In this document: one piece after another, positions 3,731 to 46,240 of the stretch | Layout of the letters: every line of letters starts with the position of its first letter | Position numbering within the stretch: the stretch's first letter is position 1 | NCBI RefSeq assembly: GCF_018350175.1 | Contig: NC_058379.1 | Span: 81,096,001-81,160,000 of the forward strand | Reading direction: 5' to 3' | DNA: 64,000 bases | Source of the DNA: Felis catus | Lineage: Eukaryota | The notes under the pieces: model-generated | Database searches by the model: none | What the model was told of the DNA's origin: nothing | Seen by the model: only the letters and a program-made list of their open reading frames with translations | Made by a program: the position numbers and the translations under genes

Positions 3731-4090
3731 TTAAGACCAACTGATTTTGATCAGTGGCATCAGCTGTTCCGTCCACCTGCTGAGGAAGAGGTGTGCAGGC
3801 TCCTGAGGATGGCCTTTGTGGCCGAGTAGGCCTGAATCTGGAGATTCTGGGCAGAGCTGGACACGCAGAGGATCCCATATGCTGGACTGTTCAGACCTTA
3901 GGACATTTTGCCAGAAGTTTCTTCACCATTGGCTTTTCAGATTGCATTTACTGAAAGTTCCTTCGTCTCTTCTACCCAAGACCGTTACTTTGTTTGAATA
4001 GAATCCCGTTGCATTGGCAGAATGCCGTTGAGAACACCTCAGAGACGCTTTAGAAATAACCTCATCCTTGTCCTTTGCTGCAGGCCCACA

Positions 4091-4258
4091 ATGGACGCTC
4101 TACAACTGGCAAATTCGGCTTTTGCAGTTGACCTGTTCAAACAACTGTGTGAAAAGGAGCCAGCGGGCAATGTCCTCTTCTCTCCGATCTGTCTCTCCAC
4201 CTCTCTGTCACTTGCTCAAGTAGGCACCAAAGGTGACACAGCAAATGAGATTGGACAG
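4091..4258 (+). CDS. SERPINB5: Maspin coding exon (exon 2; ATG at 4091, 5' UTR part 4084-4090), aa 1-56
   Basis: Acceptor ...tttgctgcag|GCCCACA ATG; encodes MDALQLANSAFAVDLFKQLCEKEPAGNVLFSPICLSTSLSLAQVGTKGDTANEIGQ; donor CAG|gtaagc. Confidence 0.97.
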
Positions 4259-5039
4259 GTAAGCTCCATACCTTGTTTCTGCTTTCGGTGGGAACAGACT
4301 TACCAGAACACAGAGGCGGTGCCTCGGGAAAATGAATGGGGGCTCTTGGAGAAAATTCCTCAGGATTGAGAAGTATGCCATTTCTCGCATCGTCTTAATC
4401 TATCTTTAAGTGTGTCATTAATCTCTCCTGCGACCCACATTTACAAGTACCATGTTGTGATGGACAACCTGGGGACCTGCTTGCTAGGCAATCACAATAT
4501 TTACACTAACGAGTAGCCTTTGGGGAGTCTCTCTGATACTTTGTGAAAATCAGTCAAGATGGTGTTTGTTAAATGTGCCACTGCAGATACCCCGTCCAGT
4601 GCGTGTTTATTTATGGCATCATGCTTTACTTTAAGATGCAGGCTCAACTTCATTCTACTCTGTGATGTATTCTACCCTATAATGTGTCCATATTAGATAA
4701 ATCGATCTGTGCTTATGTTGGTATAGAAATAACTTAAAAATTTTTCTGCCTTTGAGTAACAGGGATAAAGAAGCAGATGCGTTGTGCTTACTTATGTTCC
4801 AGAATACTCCCTGGGGCTTGAGTATCCTATTTAAGAAGAATGCAATGAACTGATGTCGACCCTCCCCCACATATGCATATAGTTATATGTATATGTGTGT
4901 GTATTTTACTTTTTTTTTTGTTGTTTGAGTTTCTTTTTGGCTATGGCTGACCATCTAGCTTTGTAAAATTCTTAGACCTCCAAATGGAGTGACCTTCTCT
5001 ATCTTGCTATGTTTCATATTTGCTCACTTACCTTTATTT

Positions 5040-8018: not shown

Positions 8019-8139
8019 CTTTATGAGGACAGTTGAGCAGGAAGATACTGCTCCCCCGAGGCGGCTGACCATGGTCTTGTATCCATTGCAGTGGGAAGAG
8101 ACAAAGCTTGGTGGATGATGGATTGTTTTCTCTTCACAG

Positions 8140-8277
8140 GTCCTTCATTTTGGAAACATCAAAGATGTACCCTTTGGATTTCAAACAGTGACATCGGATG
8201 TAAACAAACTTAGTTCCTTTTACTCCCTGAAACTGATCAAACGACTCTACGTAGACAAATCTCTGAATCCTTCTACA
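8140..8277 (+). CDS. SERPINB5: Maspin exon 3, aa 57-102
   Basis: Acceptor ttttctcttcacag|; 138 nt, VLHFGNIKDVPFGFQTVTSDVNKLSSFYSLKLIKRLYVDKSLNPST; donor ACA|gtaagt. Confidence 0.97.
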
Positions 8278-8417
8278 GTAAGTGGGTTAAAGCAATTCGC
8301 ACGCTTCGACTCTTTACCAGGAGTGGCATTTTCACGTGGTTACACCCACCACTTTGTTTTCAGCAAAATCCACTTCTAAGATGCTCATTTATGACTTGAA
8401 GCTTATTAAAATAAATC

Positions 8418-11072: not shown

Positions 11073-11190
11073 GAGTTCATCAGCTCTACAAAGAGACCCT
11101 ACGCGAAGGAAATGGAAACCGTTGACTTCAAAGAGAAATTGGAAGAGACGAAAAGTCAGATCAACCAGTCCATCAAGGACCTCACCGACG
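11073..11190 (+). CDS. SERPINB5: Maspin exon 4, aa 103-142 (phase 1 end), followed by a GC donor
   Basis: Acceptor gtttttcag|; 118 nt, EFISSTKRPYAKEMETVDFKEKLEETKSQINQSIKDLTD-G; frame with exon 5 is kept only with donor GACG|gcaagtat. Confidence 0.94.
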
Positions 11191-12109
11191 GCAAGTATCT
11201 TTTACTTACTTGGACACCGCCTTCTCTTGACTCTTCCTGCTAAGCAGAGGACTGAACATCTGGAGGCTTCCTTGGATGCTTTCAGTAGACAGGCTAAATT
11301 CTTGCCCTTGAAATGCCAGACATGTCAACCACGTGACTCCTGGGCTCCTGGGCTCCTGGGTGTCGACACCCTCGTCATCTAAGGCTTGGCAGGAATTCCT
11401 GGTGCTTCAGTTCCGGTCCACTTTGCTGTGCTCCCCAGGGAGCTGCTGGCTGGTCCTCCTGGAGCCCCAGCCCTGCCTCCAACAGAGGGTGGCTTTGGGC
11501 CACTCACTGGCCAGTTTCTCGATGCGGAGACGAAGGGCTTGGGCTTTAACTTAATCCCTGCGGCCACCTTCGGCTCAAAAATTCTGCGAATTTTTTGAAG
11601 GAAAAAAGGACAAAAGCTCCTAGGCAATCAAACACACGTCCAGAAAAAACAAAACAAAGCGAACTGAGGAGGAAACTTGTCCTCAGACCCACCACTCCCA
11701 GTGCTGGTCTGCCCTCTGCTAGCCTCAGGGTCTCTTCCGCAGTATCTGCCTGGTCCTGCCCCTGACTCAGTGCTCTCCTCCTGCACCGACCCTCCCCGCC
11801 CCACCCCACCTCCATGGTGTGTCGTCCTCCCTGGATAGGAATTGGAGCTGGGATGAGTCTGAGTGCCGGTCAGTGTCCATGTGTCCCTTCCTGGGGACAT
11901 GTTTGTGTTGTACAGAGTGGACTTGTTGGGACACAGCACTTAAATGTGACGGACTGACTGTGCAGATGAACCTTTCAGGTCCCACCTGCGTTGCCGGGAA
12001 GGTCACACTTCTTAGCAAGGGAGACACGCTTCCCGTAGGAATGGCCAGAGGGGTCCTGTCGTGCCGCTGACTCAGGAATGACAGGTTCCACGCTGTAACT
12101 GCAGAGTGA

Positions 12110-13430: not shown

Positions 13431-13733
13431 ACAAGGCATTCAAAAGGGGTAGCTCGTGTTTTTCTTCTTCCTGTTCTTCCTGTTCTTCTCCCTCCCTTCC
13501 CCTCTGCTTTCTGCCCGCCCCACCCCTGCCGCCAGATCTCTTCGGTAAGTCTTCTCGCAACAGGATGAAAGGAGAGAAAGGAACCCTTGTGAGGCATTCC
13601 GGGCCATCGGTCGAACCTTGTGTGGGTGGCTCCAGCCGTGACAAATACCCAGGGAGCGGATGCGGTGTGGATCCCAGATGTGGTGTTGAAGAATAACCCT
13701 GTGCAATCTGTGGTTTCCTACAATTGTTTGCAG

Positions 13734-13876
13734 GCCGCTTTGAGAACATTTTGTCTGACAGCAGTGTCAGTGAGCAGACCCAAATCCTGGTGGTTAATGC
13801 TGCCTACTTCGTTGGAAAGTGGATGAAGAAATTTCCTGAATCCGAAACCAGAGAATGCCCTTTCAGAATCAACAAG
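13734..13876 (+). CDS. SERPINB5: Maspin exon 5, aa 142-189
   Basis: Acceptor tgtttgcag|; 143 nt, (G)RFENILSDSSVSEQTQILVVNAAYFVGKWMKKFPESETRECPFRINK; donor AAG|gtacgt. Confidence 0.97.
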
Positions 13877-15708: not shown

Positions 15709-16510
15709 CTATTTCAGATCTTTTAAAGAAAAAAAAATACAGCAAGGATACAGGGATACAGGGAAGGGTAGCCCCTCCTTCCCTGTCTCAAGGTTCCTCC
15801 CCAGAGGTAACGACCATTCTGAAATGTCCAATTCCCTCCTGCTACTGACAAGGAAACTGAGGTCCAAGGAGTGAAGTGATTCCCTTAAGATCACACCATC
15901 TGTTTATGTCACATTTGAGACCGAAACCCCAGGTTCTTATCTCGAATCCAGACTTCTTCACAGCTCAGATCAGAGTAGGCGGCCGTACAGGGAGAGGGGG
16001 ATTAAAAACAAAGGAGAACAGAGGACCAAACAAATGTGATTTGTGTCTTGCTGTGTGCTGAGTGTTCCCTCATATGTATTCGACCAGCAAACGCTGCCTA
16101 AGTAGCTATGTGGTTTGCCCTCGAATTTATTTCCACTCCACCAGGAATAAAGAGCTGGCAATTATGAGCATCTATAAAGACTAAGTCAAAGTCTGCCTCT
16201 GTTTTCAGTCTTACTCTCTTATTTTCAATGTTTTGTATAAGCAAGTGCCGTATTACGTATAGTTCCCGAAATACATTGGAATGATAAGGCATGTGAATGG
16301 CTTTTCAAAGGAAGTCATTGATCTTCCGGGGATAGTCTGTGATGGTCTGGGTCCAGTACAGTTGGGATCCCAGCGGAGGGATGATTACACCACGATGGTC
16401 TGAAACTATAACAAGAACAAATGTGCGTGTGTGCGTGTGCGTGCGGGTGTGTGTATTTATGCTTGTGTGAACTGAAAAGCAAGTGATCCGAATTTCTTCT
16501 CCTCTTACAG

Positions 16511-16678
16511 ACAGACACCAAACCGGTGCAGATGATGAATATGGACGCCACGTTCTGTATGGGCAACATTGATGGTATTAATTGTAAGATCATAGAGCTT
16601 CCCTTTCAAAACAAACACCTCAGCCTGCTTATTCTGCTCCCCAAGGATGTGGAGGATGAGTCCACGGGCCTGGAGAAG
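16511..16678 (+). CDS. SERPINB5: Maspin exon 6, aa 190-245
   Basis: Acceptor ttcttctcctcttacag|; 168 nt, TDTKPVQMMNMDATFCMGNIDGINCKIIELPFQNKHLSLLILLPKDVEDESTGLEK; donor AAG|gtgagg. Confidence 0.97.
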
Positions 16679-17631
16679 GTGAGGAGGGAGGGGGGTGTTC
16701 AACACAAAGGTGCCACCTGCTGTGACAAGGAGCCGTGTGGAGGGCACTGTGCGTGGCTGTGACGCTGCCCTGCCTTACACATCACTTGCTCAGTCGTCTC
16801 CAAGGGTTTCGTGGTCCTTTCTGGGCCTTTGTCTTTGACATGAAAACGGCCAGCATGTATTTGGCACTCGTGACCAGCCAGGAGCTGTGAGGTCCCCATG
16901 TACGCCTTCTCCTCGACTTCTTGGGACAGGCCTATCTATTTATTAGAAGCTGTCACGGTGCTCTTGTTGACTGAGGGACCTGAGGCACAGCAGGGGAGGT
17001 GACAAGTCTGTGGTCACCTAACTCATCGGTGGCACGTAGAATCAGAATTGGAGCCCGGGAAGTTGGAATCTGTGTTCTCAATCTAGCCCCGAGTGCCTAT
17101 TATTAGCATCTTGCGTTAGTGTGGTACATCTGTTACAACCGATGAACCAGTTGTCCACACATTATTCATAAAGTCTGCAGCCTGCTTTAGGGTTCACTTT
17201 GTGTTGTACCTTCTACGGGTCCGGAAAAGCTCTTTTAATGCGTACACACAGAGGAGATTTTATTATGCTTCATCCTTTATGGAGGTTATTAGAGGCACGA
17301 GGTGTAGATAACAGTAGAGGTTCATCTCCTTGTGAAGGATGCTTTTGCTCCCCCTCTGCTCTGGCAGCCCCATCCAGCCACCCAGGGCCACCTGCTCCCC
17401 CCTCGGCCCCGTGTTCTCAGCTCCCTAGCTCCCCTCCACCAGGGCCTCGGCCCTTGGCCAGGGAGAAGGACAGGCTCGTTGAGGACCCCAGAGGTGACCT
17501 GCTTCATTTCCAGTCATGCCTCGGTTACGCCCTGGCTTTCCAGGGAGTGGTCTCAGTCCATGTCCGTCCTACTTGCTGCTTTAATGGTCATTACGCTTTA
17601 TCCATCACTGGCCTTTGTTACTCTTTTTCCT

Positions 17632-18742: not shown

Positions 18743-19793
18743 CATATATAATGGAGGAAGGGAAAAAACTTTTTTTTCCCCCTTCTGACTAGTCTTTTTG
18801 AATTATGAATGAATATTCTTCCCTCTCTTCATTCTCAGATAATAAATGGGCAAGAGAATATACCTTTTGGCTGAAAAATTCTAGTTACTTATGGCAATCT
18901 TTCGGTTCTAATAATGTGCCATAAATAAAAACAGTAGTCATTGAAAACCAGATTATCATAGATGAACAAGAGAATCCAACGGTACCTTCCCCCACTAAAC
19001 ACACAACAAACAGACTTGTGACCAGTCTGTGACCTTGCCATGTTACTGATTTTTATGAGTTTCGTGTGAATAACTTCAGTGCAAGATTGTCCCATGATAA
19101 TACGGTCAAGGTACTATCATTCTCAGTTGTATTCTTGTTTCTTCTCCAGCCAGTGAGGGGTTGGGAGGGCAAGGAGCAATTTCAGATTTGCTCAGCGAAG
19201 AATTTTGTGACTCAACCATTCCATGTGTCATGGCATAGCTCTCATTTTTAAAATAACCAACTGAAATGGATGCATTCATCACCCCCGGTCTTCGAGAATG
19301 GCCATAGACAGCTTAACAAAGAGTAACTCATTTTACAAAGAGTAACTTTAGAGTTGATTTGAGTTACTTTTGATGCCAGGCCAAGTACCCGAATATTCTG
19401 GATTTCCTAGAGGAGAAATTAAAACCAGCATTCAGGCAATAGTATGTATAAAAGCCCTCCTAGTTTTATGTTTATGTTACTCTTATTTATGCAACATCAT
19501 CGGCCACACATCCATTTCTACTCTATAACTTGAAAGAAATAGCCTGAGACATTTCAGGGCAAGGGGACTGTGGTCGGAGCATGGCGGGGAGGAGAGCAGT
19601 GCTGGGTGGCTGGGTGCATCTTTGATACGGGAAACCAGTCCCACACCCAGACCGCAGGGTTGATTCCATTTTCGGTGGTCCGAGGGCACTGCTTCAGCAC
19701 TGGACTCACGATGGCACTTTCTGTTGCCAATCAAGCTGGATCTTTCACATCTGGGAATAAAAAAAATAATTTCCTTTCCTTTTGGTCCTTCAG

Positions 19794-20186
19794 GTTGAAC
19801 AACAACTCAACTCAGAGACGCTCTTGCAGTGGACTAATCCCAGCACCATGGCCAATGCCAAAGTCAAACTCTCCATTCCAAAATTTAAGGTGGAAAAGAT
19901 TGTTGATCCCAAAGCTAGTCTGGAAAATCTAGGGCTGAAAAATATCTTTAATGAGAATACATCCGATTTCTCTGGAATGTCAGAGACCAAGGGAGTGGCC
20001 CTCTCCAATGTTGTTCACAGAGTGTGCTTAGAAATAACTGAAGATGGTGGGGATTCCATGGAGGTGCCAGGGTCACGAATCCTGCAACACAAGGATGAAT
20101 TCAATGCCGACCACCCATTTATTTACATCGTCAGGCACAACAAAACGCGAAACATCATTTTCTTTGGCAAGTTCTGTTCCCCTTAA
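19794..20186 (+). CDS. SERPINB5: Maspin exon 7 coding part, aa 246-375 + TAA, includes reactive centre loop
   Basis: Acceptor ttttggtccttcag|; VEQQLNSETLLQWTNPSTM...TEDGGDSMEVPGSRILQHKDEFNADHPFIYIVRHNKTRNIIFFGKFCSP*; serpin signature ADHPF. Confidence 0.98.
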   Translation, partial: VEQQLNSETLLQWTNPSTMANAKVKLSIPKFKVEKIVDPKASLENLGLKNIFNENTSDFSGMSETKGVALSNVVHRVCLEITEDGGDSMEVPGSRILQHKDEFNADHPFIYIVRHNKTRNIIFFGKFCSP

Positions 20187-20260
20187 GTGGCAAAAGCCCA
20201 GGTTAAGTCCCACCTGACTTTTCTGTAAACTCTGCATCCAAAGAAACACTTTCTAAATAC

Positions 20261-20266
20261 AATAAA
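20261..20266 (+). terminator. Proximal poly(A) signal AATAAA in SERPINB5 3' UTR
   Basis: AATAAA 75 nt after the stop codon; only a modest downstream GU element. Confidence 0.45.
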
Positions 20267-21569
20267 TTGTTAATATTGCTGGATCTGGAAGCTGCTGGTA
20301 CTTGACCTGTGTAGCCCTCGTATCAATAGACCCTTCTTTTCCAATTCTTCGTTTTGTTCTCCCTTCACCTCCTCCCCATAAGACACAATGCTTTTAATGA
20401 AAAGGGGTTACTCTGGAGGAAATATATGTATTCATTATGTGTCAGCTTATCTCAGGTTGTTGGCAGGAATACAGTCTTTCACAAAGAAAATCCCCGGAAG
20501 GGGGATCTGGAGGATTTTAGAGCTTTACCTTCCTTCATTCACTGGGATCAGAATTCTGGGAACACCAGAATGTTCCAGACATTCTTACTTCCCCGAAAGA
20601 CTAAAGAAACTGGTACACGGGATCCACAAAACTTTCTTAGCCCCGCTGGAACTTGGGCACACGTTCAGGCTACTGTCGGTCCACAGCTCCTTATGCTAAA
20701 CGGTGGTACCGGTGTTTTCCTCAAACTCTGACTTTTTGGGATTTTAGAAAGCTAACCTGTTGCACATACTATGTGTTTCGGAACTCCACTGATAGAGTCT
20801 GGGACAGCACCCTATAAATCAACACCTTAATATTTCTGCCACAACCCATACATTTTCACACAAGCTGGATAGACAGACTCTGAGCAGCCCGTAAGTACCA
20901 GGTTTTGCCACCAAATGAGTGTGCCAGCAGCTTATGAACAGACTGTGTTTTCAGAACTTTTGGAAACTTTGGAGTGTTGGAGAAGGGATTGCAGACCTAT
21001 AGCAGCTGAAGTGCAGCACCTCGGGGGGGAGGCAGGATTTTACTAAAAGCCCACTTTCACTTTAAGCAGGACACCCACCCAGTCACTTGGTTGGTGGTTA
21101 GACCAGTGACTGGCAGTGAACGCTGAGTCGGCAAGGTCTTGGGTGTCTCACAACCGGGGACCTCAAACCCGAGGGGACTTTAAGGGAGCCAATGAGAGAG
21201 TAAGGAACTTTTCTGTTTGTCCGATGTGATAGTGGGAAGGGGAAAGGAGTTAATGCCTTTGGGAAACCTTGCGGAAACAGAACTAAAGCAACCCAGTGCT
21301 CTCACTGCCGTGACATGCACGTTTCCAGACTGTGGCTTTAGTTACTGTGGATGGCTAGTCAGTAACTTCCATGAACGTAATTTGGGAAGGTGGCCTGTCC
21401 AGTAATCTATGCTGCAAATACACGGATTAATTCACTGGCAAGGAGAGTGCATTTACTGAAGGTTTCATGATATTCCTTTGCTCATCTCTTCTCTGGCTTT
21501 CGTTGTAAATATGTTCAACTTTCTTCTTGCTCCGAAGGTTCAATATTGAATTTCTTGGATGCTATGGAC

Positions 21570-22845: not shown

Positions 22846-23743
22846 GGACCCTATCTAAAGAACAGATGCTGGGGAGGGGTCCCCCAGGCAGAGCAGGGAG
22901 AAGGGGGTGCAGGGGGCATGCAGAGAGGGTGCCTGCTGTCAGCGGCAGTGACACGTGCAGGGGGCCACGCTGGAGTATTTTAAGATTCTGCTCAAAGGTC
23001 CGCCCAGTGAAGGTGTGCGTTCTCCCGGGAGCCCACGGGAGTGTCCTGTGAGAAAGAGGCACCTCTCGCCCTAGAGTCCAATTGCACCAGTGAGGCGAGG
23101 TCCTTCCCTTCTCCCCTTCCCTCTCCTTCCTCCCCTCGCCCTGCAAGTTGCGTATTATAAGGAGCAGGAGAAGAGCAGGGTGGGTAAGTGGTGGGGAAGC
23201 CTCCCTCCACTTCCATCCTCTGTGGGTTCGTGAGCCCCAACAGACCCCAAGCTGTGATGGATGGAGACTCTGAAGTTCTGATTTAGCAGAATTCTGGGCT
23301 TTTTCACTTCTGAAAATGTCTTCATTAATACATGAAAGTGACCGGAGAGGCATCAGTCTAGGGCATTTGGTTTAGGGGGTGCGAAGGACAATGGTGCAGC
23401 GCGGACTTGAGAAGGCATCAGAAGGGAAGCAGTAAGTGCCTGGTTCACCAATAAACCCGTTACGGGTATATTACCTCATTTAATCATGGCAACAGACGTA
23501 TGAGGAGGAAACCACAATCCTGTCTTATAAGTGAGGATACTGAGACACGGAATGGGTACATCACCAGGGCAAGGGCACAGAGCTGATGAGAGCTGATGGC
23601 CAGATTGGAACTCCTGCAGACTGAGTTCAGAACCAGGGCTCTGACCTCGCTGCCACCAACTTCCGCCTGGCATTGCCCCTGGCGAGCGGCCACTGCAGGT
23701 GCCTGGAAGAATTCCTCCCTCCTCTGGACCTTCTCTATTTTGG

Positions 23744-24067
23744 AGTTCCCAGAGGTTTGTCTCTTCCTGCCAGGTTTTGCTGTCAGCTCAAATGTGCCCA
23801 GGTGTAACCGGCTCAGTTGGGTACATTGATAGAACATCCTCTACAGGCCAGGTGTTGTATGTGAAAGTCTTTATGGATGTTACTCATTTGCGTATTCTTA
23901 TAATAACCCTAGAGTTAGGCGCGATGCCCATATATTTCAGGAGGAAATATGGGCTTAGAGGAATTGGGCAAAGCATCCAAATCGGTGATTGGCAGAGTAT
24001 GTGTGCAGCTCTGTCTGACCCCAGAGCCTACGGTCCTTCCGCGGTGACTTATGGTCCTTGGACCATG
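23744..24067 (+). repeat. Inverted repeat arm 1 (324 bp; partner 25600-25923)
   Basis: Base-by-base comparison with the reverse complement of 25600-25923: 313/324 identical, 11 transitions, no indels; contains a MIR-like fragment. Confidence 0.97.
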
Positions 24068-24158
24068 TGGGGCCATGTGGGGCTCAAACTCATGAACTGT
24101 GAGATCATGACCTGAGCCAAAGTCAGATGCTCAACCGACTGAGCCCCCCAGGCGCACC
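24063..24158 (-). mobile_element. 5' half of a CanSINE split by an inversion breakpoint
   Basis: - strand reads GGTGCGCCTGGGGGGCTCAGTCGG...TTTGAGCCCCACATGG then stops; upstream flank AAAAATGAAATTTTGT (24174-24159). Confidence 0.9.
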
Positions 24159-24489
24159 ACAAAATTTCATTTTTAACATAAATCGAACAAGATCGTCCTT
24201 GAAGCAAATTTAATGGAATTCATCAAGTAAGAATTGTTAATGGAATCAAATGCACTGAGGTTAATAGTATGGGTTCTGAGTCCAAGAGTGAGGGTGTCCA
24301 TCTTCGTAACACAATCTAGCAGCCACATGCGCTCAGCAAGTTTCTTCTGTGTCTCTAAAGCCTCAATTCCTTTAGCCGGTCCTCAGGACTGTTGTGGAAG
24401 CTGAATTAAAATACATGTTATGCTTAGCACAGTACCCAGCTCCTAACTGGCAGTGGGGTTGATAAAAGTAAGAGTTGAAAAAAATGCTC

Positions 24490-24662
24490 ATTAATAATAA
24501 TTATTTAATAATAATGGTACTAGTAATAATATACTAGCACTATTTATAAAATATTATTATTATAATTACAGTAATAATTATAATGTAATTATACTTTTTT
24601 ATACATTTAATTATACATTATTATACATTATATACATGTATATATATAATATATACATTAGT
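24490..24662. repeat. AT-rich low-complexity tract
   Basis: (TAA)n/(TA)n-like sequence almost devoid of G and C. Confidence 0.85.
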
Positions 24663-24672
24663 ATAACTCATT

Positions 24673-24720
24673 TGCATGAGTTAGTGCAAAGCCATCCAGA
24701 GGGAGCCTGCCCCAGTGCAT
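24673..24720 (+). repeat. 48-bp direct repeat copy 1 (partner 25555-25602)
   Basis: TGCAT(G/T)AGTTAGTGCAAAGCCATCCAGAGGGAGCCTGCCCC(A/C)GTGCAT, 46/48 identical. Confidence 0.95.
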
Positions 24721-24834
24721 TCCTCCAGTGGAGAGCCACTTTGGAAAACTGGCTGAATATTTGCATATGGGTCAGTAATTCCATTTCCCAAGTATGTGTG
24801 TGTATAAATATATACAAGTTATATATATATATAT

Positions 24835-25026
24835 TTTTTTTTTTTAAGAGAGAGAGAGAGTGTGCGAGTGGGGGGCACACAGGGAGAGGGAGAGGGAATC
24901 CCAAGCAGGATCCACTTGGGAGACGGTGTGGAGTCTGATGCAGGGCTCGATCCCACAACCGTGAGATCATGACTTGAGCAGAAATCAAGAGTTGGATGCT
25001 TACTCGACTGAGCCACCAGGGGCCCC
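24835..25026 (-). mobile_element. CanSINE inside the inverted segment
   Basis: poly-T/(GA)n, GAATCCCAAGCAGG, head ...GAGCCACCAGGGGCCCC. Confidence 0.88.
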
Positions 25027-25554
25027 TGTAAGTTATATTTGTATGTGCCCTCCTTATACACGGCCATTACAAGGCAGCTCTGGGTCAGCCCCGCAGCCCT
25101 GGACACAGATATCATCAGGCCGCCTGGTGCCAGGACCCCCCCATCCAGCCAGTTTCAATCTGGACTCCTGCTGTTTCCTTCTGGTTCCACATGCACTCTG
25201 AGCCTCGTGTGCAACACTTCATTCTCCTAACAGGACCACCGAGCACGTGCTTCTTTCTGTGGGGTCCCTGCCCTCTCTCTCTTTCCACATCTGGACTAAG
25301 GCTCCAGGCCCTTCTGAAATCCCCTCTCCTTCCCACTGCTTTCTGGGTGCAGCCACCTCAGCAGAGAGACACTACCCTGTCACTGAGTGCCAGTGAGCCT
25401 ATGCAGCCCCTCAGGGCAGGGGAGAGGTGCTCCTGGTGTCCTGGTGAAGACCAGCGCAGGGACTAACCAAGAAGTTTTGTTCTGTTCTGTGTCCTTAAAG
25501 GACAAGAGACAGGCATTGCTTTGGCAACACTGGGTGGCCAGAGGTCCCATGTGA

Positions 25555-25602
25555 TGCATTAGTTAGTGCAAAGCCATCCAGAGGGAGCCTGCCCCCGTGC
25601 AT
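25555..25602 (+). repeat. 48-bp direct repeat copy 2, abutting inverted repeat arm 2
   Basis: 46/48 identical to 24673-24720; last 3 nt (CAT) shared with the start of arm 2. Confidence 0.95.
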
Positions 25603-25923
25603 GGTTCAAGGGCCGTAAGTCACCACAGAAGGACCGTAGGCTCTGGGGTCAGACAGAGCCGCACACATACTCTGCCAATCACCAATTTGGATACTTTGCC
25701 CAATTCCTCTAAGCCCATATTTCCTTCTGAAATATATGGGCATCGCGCCTAACTCTAGGGTTATTGTAAGAATACGCAAATGAGTAACATCCATAAAGAC
25801 TTTCACATACAACACCTGGCCCGTAGAGGATGTTCTATCAATGTACCCAACTGAGCCGGTTACACCTGGGCACATTTGAGCTGACAGCAAAACCTGGCAG
25901 GAAGAGACAAACCTCTGGGAACT
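25600..25923 (-). repeat. Inverted repeat arm 2 (324 bp; partner 23744-24067)
   Basis: See arm 1; ORF-track peptides at 23699-24115 (+) and 25606-25890 (-) are near-identical as a result. Confidence 0.97.
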
Positions 25924-26027
25924 GACAGCACAGAGCCCGTTTCAGATCCTCTGTCCCTCTCTGTCTCTGCCCCTCCCCCACTCATGCTTGCTCTTTCTCT
26001 CTCAAAAATAAATAAGCATTAAAAAAA
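25922..26027 (+). mobile_element. 3' half of the split CanSINE
   Basis: Begins abruptly at CTGACAGCACAGAGCCC, runs through (CT)n to the A-tail; downstream flank AAAAATGAAATATTGT (26023-26038) matches the 5'-half flank at 15/16. Confidence 0.9.
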
Positions 26028-26969
26028 TGAAATATTGTGTTAAATGTAAGACAAACGAATGTAGGTAAAGATAAACCTTAGCTAAATATTTCCCTCAGTA
26101 AGCAAACCTTGTAGGAATGTTTACTTTTCAAGCATTTCTGGGTAAATGTAATCTATTTTTTAACAGTTCGGAGCTCTTTCCTCGGGGGTCATATTCAGTC
26201 ACCTGTATGCCATTTGCTCTTCCTACCGGATTTGAAAGGCTTCCCTGTTTTAGTTTTTCGCTCTTAGACCTGAAACTGCTTCCACAGCATTCTTGCCCTC
26301 AGCCCCACCCCACGGCCACAGAGGATTTAGTAGATGGGCGTGTCCCTGCTCACAGGTTTCTCTCCCTGTTTCCACCCTCTGGCCCGACTGTAATAGCAGC
26401 TCCAGTCTGTGGGGGCTTTCAAGTGAGCGGATCAAAGTGTGCTACTGATAGGGAATGACTCTTCCTGACCCAAGTCCTGGAACAGAATAAGTAGACGGCG
26501 CTATTCTCCGTTAGAGACACGGTAGGTACAGCCGTGTCACTGGAACTCCTCACTGCCTTTTAGGAGCCTTACCAGACCCCGGCAGTCGGACTGAGTCCTC
26601 TCTATCTCTACCATAAGCTCCGTGCCTTCCATAAACAGTAAATATTAATACATACTTCTGATTGATGGGAAAAGAGCATCTGATTCTGCAGGTAATCCAC
26701 CCGTTTGAGTTGTTTTGCTCTCTCAGAACTAACAACGCCTTCTTTGCTGACTTAAAAAAAAATCATTCGCACTTCTGAAATGAGTCTGGAGGATCAATAG
26801 TTCTGTGGGGATGAGATGATGCTATGAAAATAGGAATCCATGCTTAAAAAGTCGTGCACAGATTGTGTTGAATGAGATGAAAGAGGTTCCTGCAGTACTT
26901 TCTAAGCTTTTGAGAGGTCAGTGGGCTTTGTAACTCTCTGGGGAAGCATGTGGGACCTTGCTTCTTAAA

Positions 26970-27167
26970 TTTATTCATTTTTAAAATGTTTATTCATTTA
27001 TTTTGAGGGAGGAAGGCAGAGAGAGAGAGGGATGAGAAGGAATCCCAAGCAGGCTTTGTGCTGTCAGTACAGAGCCCAACTCAGGGCTTGATCCCATGAA
27101 CCGTGAGATCATGACCTGAGCAGAAATCAAGAGTTGGTCACTTAACTGACTGAGCCACCCAGGTGCC
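26970..27167 (-). mobile_element. CanSINE
   Basis: Tail, GAATCCCAAGCAGG, head ...GAGCCACCCAGGTGCC. Confidence 0.88.
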
Positions 27168-46080: not shown

Positions 46081-46240
46081 NNNNNNNNNNNNNNNNNNNN
46101 NNNNNNNNNNNNNNNNNNNNNNNNNNNNNNNNNNNNNNNNNNNNNNNNNNNNNNNNNNNNNNNNNNNNNNNNNNNNNNNNNNNNNNNNNNNNNNNNNNNN
46201 NNNNNNNNNNNNNNNNNNNNNNNNNNNNNNNNNNNNNNNT
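46081..46240. other. Assembly gap (160 N)
   Basis: Run of N. Confidence 1.

Follow-up and report, generated by a model that had tools for sequence, protein, structure and literature searches.

Inversions bounded by inverted copies of their own flanking DNA have been described in the Drosophila melanogaster group, where they are attributed to staggered breaks (Ranz et al. 2007, PMC1885836); the two ends of such a segment carry inverted duplicates of DNA that is single-copy in outgroups, and a pre-existing repeat is absent from the breakpoints. Among human rearrangements, the CNV-flanked inversions termed dupINV and delINVdup (Collins et al. 2017, PMC5338099; Frith and Khan, 10.1101/175943) combine a duplication on one side with a deletion on the other, and their junction microhomology and templated fillers point to template switching. 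Other human inversions are mediated by inverted repeats and recur (Aguado et al. 2014, PMC3961182), and breakage associated with palindromes or hairpins has likewise been linked to template switching. Here we describe a segment of about 1.9 kb within a 64,000-nucleotide stretch of the Felis catus genome (GCF_018350175.1, contig NC_058379.1, positions 81,096,001 to 81,160,000; hereafter the window) that can be compared with each of these systems.

With the Drosophila inversions the cat locus shares both the inverted duplication of outgroup-single-copy DNA and the lack of a pre-existing repeat at the breakpoints. It differs from them in its small size (against megabases), in its mammalian host, in being duplicated at one breakpoint only with 8 nt lost at the other, in carrying an extra templated insertion inside, and in that the duplicates later mediated a re-inversion. 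The pairing of duplication with deletion, together with the microhomology and fillers, is held in common with dupINV and delINVdup; unlike those, the cat deletion amounts to just 8 nt, the rearrangement is fixed in a mammalian family instead of being a rare human allele, and its ancestral state is readable from an intact outgroup SINE. The recurrent human inversions find a parallel in the leopard cats, genus Prionailurus, where the spacer has flipped with its junctions kept and its arms gene-converted, although the cat arms are only 324 bp long, were themselves born of the first rearrangement, and have one documented flip. As in palindrome-associated breakage, the SINE-side breakpoints fall within the 5' arm of a putative palindrome and at the base of that arm; the cat palindrome is short and partly reconstructed, and may have had a causal role. 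The locus is a clean, well-dated instance of a known rearrangement type.

Two arms, X and X' (Table 1), form a 97% complementary inverted repeat of 324 nt (313/324 bases identical) with 1532 nt between them. All 11 mismatches are transitions, mostly at CpG, and a whole-assembly search of the 2.43-Gb assembly returned two copies of X, both in the window. Two halves of one SINE face in opposite directions, their limits set by alignment to ten full-length copies within the same window; the 3' half starts at 25922 or 25924. After reverse complementation of the left one, the two SINE flanks match at 15 of 16 positions, and about 8 nt of the SINE consensus, GCTCTGTG, are absent between the halves. 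Junction J1 shares 5 nt (CCATG in the window, CCAYG across felids) and J2 shares 2 nt (CT). A 10-nt unit, CCATGTGGGG, occurs twice at J1 (CCAYGTGGGG x2, that is, the filler TGGGG plus neighbouring bases). The SINE break falls in the 5' arm of a putative perfect palindrome of 27 nt (13+1+13), this arm having been reconstructed from the hyena and the SINE consensus and being shown by no felid. The first-pass annotation had reported the 324-bp inverted duplication at the breakpoints with its 11 substitutions, the single SINE in opposite-facing halves with matching TSDs, the loss of about 8-9 central SINE bases, and the junction microhomology with a 10-bp tandem on the left, and in all of this our analysis agrees with it. 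Its SINE 5' half was real but drawn too wide (24063-24158), since 24063-24072 comprise the end of X and the 5-nt filler.

Table 1. Features of the rearranged segment, in window coordinates
Feature	Position	Strand	Remarks
Left arm X	23744-24067	+	outer (left) side, ancestral A|X adjacency; inner side, novel junction J1
J1 filler TGGGG, 5 nt	24068-24072	not assigned	in 12/12 felid assemblies
5' half of split carnivore SINE	24073-24158	-	ends at SINE-internal palindrome
Left SINE TSD	24159-24174	-	reverse complement of AAAAATGAAATTTTGT
Spacer	24175-25599	-	inverted relative to hyena and rhinoceros
d2 copy 1, felid-specific templated insertion	24673-24720	+	copies sequence adjoining X'; hyena and rhinoceros lack it
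d2 copy 2, ancestral source	25555-25599	+	adjoins X directly in both outgroups
Right arm X'	25600-25923	-	inner side, ancestral X|d2 adjacency; outer side, novel junction J2 (CT shared)
3' half of split SINE	25924-26022	+	starts within palindrome (CTG-A-CAGCACAGAGCCC)
Right SINE TSD	26023-26038	+	AAAAATGAAATATTGT

The spacer, which also holds, at about 24847-25026, an older SINE present in the hyena too, contains a 48-nt direct repeat (24673-24720 against 25555-25602, 96% identity) whose second copy adjoins X'. This repeat had been missed in the first-pass annotation. The felid-only copy, of 46-48 nt, lies 880 bp from its source, the end of which is at most 3 nt from the X boundary, and it constitutes a third felid-specific junction (the comparative queries mostly excluded window positions 24622-24665). 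That it and the arms have an endpoint and a stem branch in common suggests that both may have been made in a single event.

Orthologous DNA was reached through SERPINB5 in 14 other assemblies, comprising 11 further felid assemblies, spotted hyena, white rhinoceros and pangolin; puma, caracal, bay cat and Pallas's cat lay outside the sample. Two inverted copies of X are present in 12/12 felid assemblies (window included), and one in each of hyena and rhinoceros. Window positions 24075-25831 align to both outgroups on the minus strand and both flanks align on the plus strand. In the hyena X is single, the spacer runs the other way, and the SINE is whole, with its two TSDs and the 8 nt GCTCTGTG in place. 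The rhinoceros has one X and one d2 in the same ancestral order, and its SINE site is empty, window positions 24158 and 26025 meeting there at one point. An element intact with 16-nt TSDs in the hyena and an empty site in the rhinoceros, together with the alignment of the halves to ten other copies in the window, identify the SINE as a member of the carnivore tRNA-derived Can-SINE family. The pangolin was uninformative, the orthologous interval being deleted there.

The structure of the window and both junctions recur in eight felid assemblies from Panthera, Neofelis, Leopardus and Lynx (tiger, two further Panthera, snow leopard, lion, clouded leopard, Geoffroy's cat and Iberian lynx), with J1 and J2 the same bar point substitutions; the orientation in F. 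catus itself is given by its own assembly and these eight colinear ones. Because structure and junctions are common to assemblies of these four genera, the event can be placed, on comparative grounds, before crown Felidae, on the felid stem after the hyena split. A real, lineage-specific micro-inversion had been proposed in the first-pass annotation, with a check against outgroups. The orientation is indeed derived relative to both outgroups, the hyena giving the single X, opposite spacer and intact SINE and the rhinoceros agreeing; the rearrangement is also felid-only, but it belongs to no one species, being common to all sampled felid lineages.

The alignments show the ancestral order to be A - X - d2 - P - Q - TSD - SINE - TSD - B, and the derived order in the window to be A - X - J1 - reversed SINE 5' half - TSD - reversed Q - extra d2 copy - reversed P - d2 - reversed X - J2 - SINE 3' half - TSD - B. 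We propose that the interval was rearranged on the cat-family stem by a single complex error of break repair or replication, with one breakpoint at the X|d2 boundary and the other in the 5' arm of the SINE palindrome, where the 8 nt were lost. That spacer inversion and duplication arose in this same event has, in our estimate, a probability of about 0.5. Within such a one-step origin, serial microhomology-mediated template switching (FoSTeS/MMBIR-like) or synthesis-dependent end joining would be favored over plain cut-and-paste by about 70:30. FoSTeS/MMBIR is recognized by microhomology at novel junctions, found here at J1 (5 nt) and J2 (2 nt), and by nearby templated insertions, of which there are the 5-nt filler repeating the adjacent 10-mer and the 46-48-nt d2 copy. 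The orientation being derived, and a block that was single-copy ancestrally now standing inverted at both segment ends, the locus also has the makings of a dupINV/delINVdup rearrangement. With X single-copy in both outgroups, the origin would have been non-homologous. The 324-bp inverted arms later became a recombination substrate, with gene conversion between them and, in Prionailurus, a flip of the spacer back.

Orientation errors in assemblies classically occur at inverted repeats, so that a contig mis-joined or wrongly oriented at the repeat might be suspected; yet both junctions occur, with lineage-specific substitutions, in eleven other felid assemblies, which refutes an artefact as their source, and the 11 CpG-biased transitions between the arms form a mutational and not an error pattern. 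Moreover, 85-87% of the interval's sampled words are contained in 20 sequencing runs from 10 studies of the same organism, a search that matched same-organism runs only and carries no cross-species information. The chance of mis-assembly is, in our view, negligible. We give equally little credence to an origin by ectopic recombination (NAHR) between pre-existing inverted repeats. Such repeats of 324 bp do flank the segment today, but hyena and rhinoceros have one X each, so the repeat was absent before the event, and, apart from 5 nt, the point at which the SINE is split is not homologous to X. NAHR is thereby refuted as the origin, although it does fit the later Prionailurus flip. The first-pass annotation had likewise argued against both an assembly artefact and recombination between pre-existing repeats. 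Less remote, but still unlikely, is a cut-and-paste inversion without template switching, in which two single-strand nicks, staggered by 324 nt at the left breakpoint, were made good by fill-in synthesis while end joining closed a near-blunt SINE break. Inverted duplication of unique flanking DNA is the signature of staggered breaks in 17/29 Drosophila inversions (PMC1885836), and the cat locus is duplicated at one breakpoint only, with a small loss at the other. Staggered breaks leave unexplained, however, both the felid-specific 46-48-nt d2 copy, the source of which ends at the same boundary, and the templated 5-nt filler at J1, and the 324 bp between the nicks must unwind, a difficulty conceded by the authors of that study (PMC1885836).

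A history in two steps deserves more serious consideration, and we hold it to be quite possible, if short of an even chance. A reverse copy of the 324-bp X with the 5-nt filler would first have been inserted at a distance of 1.5 kb, into the palindrome of the SINE, where it took the place of 8 nt and produced the order now seen in Prionailurus; a reciprocal exchange between the arms would then have inverted the spacer before the living cats diverged, and Prionailurus would have reverted. This history yields exactly the same two junctions, calls for only ~0.4 kb of aberrant synthesis as against 1.9 kb in one step, and invokes a process, arm exchange, which the flip in Prionailurus and the pervasive gene conversion demonstrate at this very locus. 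The hairpin-prone palindrome would be a plausible single break site, and in human long reads non-tandem local duplications were reportedly the second commonest local rearrangement, delINVdup having been found once (10.1101/175943). It requires two flips on the sampled tree, however, even though flips are infrequent (one across the whole sampled felid tree) and 9/9 non-Prionailurus felid assemblies, both early-branching pantherine genera included, have the window's orientation. Whether in one step or in two, the outcome at the junctions is the same, and none of the sequence features tested tells the routes apart, which serves as a caution that junctions alone cannot distinguish inversion with duplication from an inverted insertion that subsequently flipped. 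Simultaneous inversion and duplication is slightly preferred here because it needs one flip, not two, on the tree of 12 felid assemblies.

In three Prionailurus assemblies the J1, J2, A|X and X|d2 adjacencies are kept and the 1.5-kb spacer is flipped relative to nine other felid assemblies, with the diagnostic arm sites at the inner ends swapped between sides. This pattern indicates that the flip came about by recombination between the arms, in one reciprocal exchange, the crossover point of which is not mappable in outer arm parts that have no fixed differences. Nineteen derived alleles occur in the left and the right arm alike within one species or clade, against only 4 arm-specific sites, all in the innermost 16 nt. 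A maximum-likelihood tree of the arms, poorly resolved save for the Lynx arm pair and the Prionailurus left-arm group, gave no split between left and right. The arms thus evolve in concert, with gene conversion between them in all of the sampled lineages, a conclusion independent of Lynx, in which many lineage-specific changes in both arms may in part reflect repeat collapse in an older assembly. Because the arms are homogenised in this way, their divergence (3.4%) cannot date the event, and we dropped the attempt to do so; divergence between inversion-flanking duplicates is, as this case cautions, unusable as a clock.

The segment lies between genes, some 2.5 kb past the point at which transcript evidence for SERPINB5 stops, in keeping with its earlier placement just downstream of that gene. 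X is conserved no better than its flanks, and no function or functional effect of the segment is indicated. Its value lies in the record that it preserves, in which a small inversion can be followed through its entire history by sequence, from the ancestral state kept in hyena and rhinoceros through SINE-palindrome breakpoint, junctions with microhomology and templated fillers, inverted repeat and concerted evolution to secondary flip. It also supplies two clean rare-genomic-change markers, the paired arms with the split SINE for Felidae and the flipped spacer for Prionailurus. It is tempting to imagine a small invertible segment whose spacer toggles recurrently and is perhaps still polymorphic in living cats, domestic cats included. 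We consider this rather improbable; were it true, orientation could matter for the SERPINB5/SERPINB12 intergenic region.

Two inverted arms, X on the left and X' on the right, lie downstream of SERPINB5, separated by a spacer and accompanied by opposite-facing halves of a single SINE. The first-pass annotation had proposed these arms, the SINE halves and their matching flanks, and all were recovered: the arms by repeat search, the halves by alignment, and the 16-nt flanks by their agreement at 15 of 16 positions. Approximately 8 nt of consensus between the SINE halves (GCTCTGTG) are absent from the window's halves. Base-by-base comparison of the arms revealed 11 mismatches, all transitions and most in CpG context, and hence a mutational rather than an error pattern. 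Furthermore, a search of the window's own assembly (2.43 Gb, 71 contigs, the window being C27:81096001-81160000) located X at two places only. The annotation had overlooked a direct repeat containing d2, the sequence that ancestrally adjoins X (25555-25599); the second copy of this repeat runs 3 nt into the start of X'.

Features of the rearranged locus and of SERPINB5 (window positions)
Feature	Position	Strand	Detail	Basis
Inverted-repeat arms	23744-24067 and 25600-25923		324 nt each, 97% complementary, 1532 nt between	Repeat search
SINE 5' half	24073-24158	minus		Alignment to ten full-length elements of this carnivore SINE within the window
SINE 3' half	25922/25924 to 26022	plus		Same alignment
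Direct repeat	24673-24720 and 25555-25602		48 nt, 96%	Repeat search
SERPINB5 exons	4078-4260, 8136-8278, 11073-11192, 13733-13876, 16509-16680, 19792-21221	plus		Cat cDNA contig

The six SERPINB5 exons match the cat cDNA contig at 99.5-100%, the stop codon ending at 20186 in the last of these. Of the serpin proteins, that of Felis catus gives the best fit to these exons, and the window is probably from domestic cat. The rearrangement begins 3.56 kb past the stop codon, and is intergenic because this start lies about 2.5 kb past the last transcript evidence. Orthologous DNA was reached from the last SERPINB5 exon through a 215-aa representative, full-length serpin B5 clusters and the named members of the carnivore-protein cluster; the encoding contigs, with 10-kb flanks, supplied the downstream DNA of 14 assemblies (L-numbers below).

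In spotted hyena (L003), both outer flanks (A, left; B, right) align in plus orientation and X is single-copy, while the alignments of window 24075-24584 and 24729-25831 run in minus orientation, as the annotation had anticipated for an outgroup. At base level hyena has an unbroken SINE that retains the two target-site duplications and the 8 nt missing from the window, and A|X and X|d2 are both contiguous; the window keeps the former at its left arm and the latter at its right. White rhinoceros (L016) has the same order, A - X - reversed spacer - B, with a single d2 and no SINE, window 24158 and 26025 meeting at one unduplicated target site. Since two halves cannot regenerate an intact retroposon, polarity is settled, the hyena and rhinoceros order being ancestral and that of the window derived. 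A hyena-specific SINE (L003:29927-30158) cuts the single ancestral X of that species into two pieces, and in Sunda pangolin (L015, about 26998-27109) window 23380 to 26482 is entirely missing from the orthologue.

Colinearity with the window, including both arms, is seen in tiger, two further Panthera, snow leopard, lion, clouded leopard, Geoffroy's cat and Iberian lynx. In these assemblies A|X, X'|d2 and the two novel junctions, J1 (X to filler and SINE 5' half) and J2 (X' to SINE 3' half), are those of the window save for point substitutions. Because pantherines and felines have it in common, the rearrangement is older than crown Felidae, which dates to roughly 11 million years ago, the hyaenid split lying several tens of millions of years back. 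The proposed lineage-specific micro-inversion is indeed absent in hyena and rhinoceros, but its lineage comprises all sampled felids. The 10-bp tandem reported at the left junction is perfect in the window, but its second unit reads CCACGTGGGG in most felid species; a CpG transition after the event thus perfected the window's tandem, the motif shared at the event being CCAYG. In Geoffroy's cat (L011:31602-31830) the SINE 3' half and flank appear aligned twice, about 225 bp apart (window 25924-26037 and 25933 onward), which suggests a local duplication or insertion immediately right of J2. Iberian lynx arms carry unusually many lineage-specific changes, and the lynx spacer matching window 24666-25044 (L012:30046-30462) is longer and just 73% identical, suggesting additional inserted sequence or noise in the assembly.

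Fishing cat (L013), leopard cat (L014) and Iriomote cat (L017) possess the arms and flanks as in the window and the whole inter-arm segment in opposite orientation. The base-level order in these Prionailurus species is A - arm - d2 ... TSD - SINE 5' half (plus) - reversed J1 - arm - J2 - SINE 3' half. As all junctions are intact and the diagnostic bases at the arms' inner ends are exchanged between sides, this arrangement is the hallmark of a reciprocal exchange between the two inverted repeats. Lineages that have the window's orientation surround Prionailurus in the tree, so that a flip on the branch to this genus is the simplest placement.

Alignment of 22 felid arms with hyena revealed 19 derived alleles, each present in both arms of one species or clade, including five in Geoffroy's cat, one in 6/6 Prionailurus arms and one in all eight arms of the window and Prionailurus. 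Arm types are separated across genera at only four sites, all within the innermost 16 nt. Given these shared alleles, mean between-species differences that are close for same-side (10.5) and opposite-side (11.5) pairs, and an arm tree without a left-right division, the 3.4% divergence of the window's arms measures time since their last homogenisation rather than the age of the event. A 17-bp deletion (window 23877-23893) occurs in the left arm of fishing cat (L013:29840-30146) and not in the right; gene conversion has therefore left some differences unerased.

The novel junctions share 5 nt and 2 nt of sequence, and the SINE has lost 8 nt. A 5-nt filler either repeats the adjacent 10-mer or equals the first d2 bases minus 3 nt, the two readings fitting alike. 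Partial evidence places the SINE breakpoints within the 5' arm of GGGCTCTGTGCTG-A-CAGCACAGAGCCC, which is perfectly palindromic provided that the missing arm read as in hyena and the SINE consensus. All sampled felids also carry a second d2 copy, about 880 bp from the first and beside an AT-rich sequence; both are absent from the hyena and rhinoceros orthologues. The source of this copy and the X duplication end ≤3 nt apart, and the two changes share a stem branch, which is why we infer that all three junctions reflect a single event with several template switches, or synthesis-dependent repair. Inversions attributed to staggered nicks with plain fill-in (PMC1885836) likewise leave an inverted duplicate at their breakpoints, but FoSTeS/MMBIR-type descriptions fit the felid locus better.

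Window-type and Prionailurus-type orders hold identical junctions, and either could have come first. In a one-step origin, to which we assign a probability of roughly 0.5, a nascent strand would leave at X|d2, copy the stretch between the SINE and A|X in the backward direction and return, giving the window order directly. It is also quite conceivable, if somewhat less probable, that the strand left at the SINE palindrome, copied X alone backwards and returned, yielding the Prionailurus order, from which one arm exchange produced that of the window. This route is favoured by its shorter aberrant synthesis and by local non-tandem duplications being reported as more frequent than delINVdup events (10.1101/175943); parsimony counts against it, as it requires two flips where the one-step origin requires one.

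Inverted duplications at inversion breakpoints (PMC1885836), CNV-flanked inversion classes (PMC5338099) and repeat-mediated recurrent inversions (PMC3961182) are already known. No paper on this SERPINB5-downstream locus was found in the literature, and genome-wide felid structural-variant lists may include it unremarked; the rearrangement is a new, unusually complete example among known inversion types. Hyena identity in X (82%) against that of the flanks (86% and 82%) gives no sign of function. The spacer also contains an older second SINE (24847-25026, minus strand), present in hyena and lacking in rhinoceros, which plays no role in the rearrangement. The AT-rich low-complexity stretch immediately left of the felid-specific d2 copy (24622-24665), part of the AT-rich sequence present in the orthologous DNA of other felids and lacking in hyena and rhinoceros, was cut from later ortholog comparison queries and still included in two earlier local alignments. 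The sole N run of the window spans 159 bases (46081-46239).
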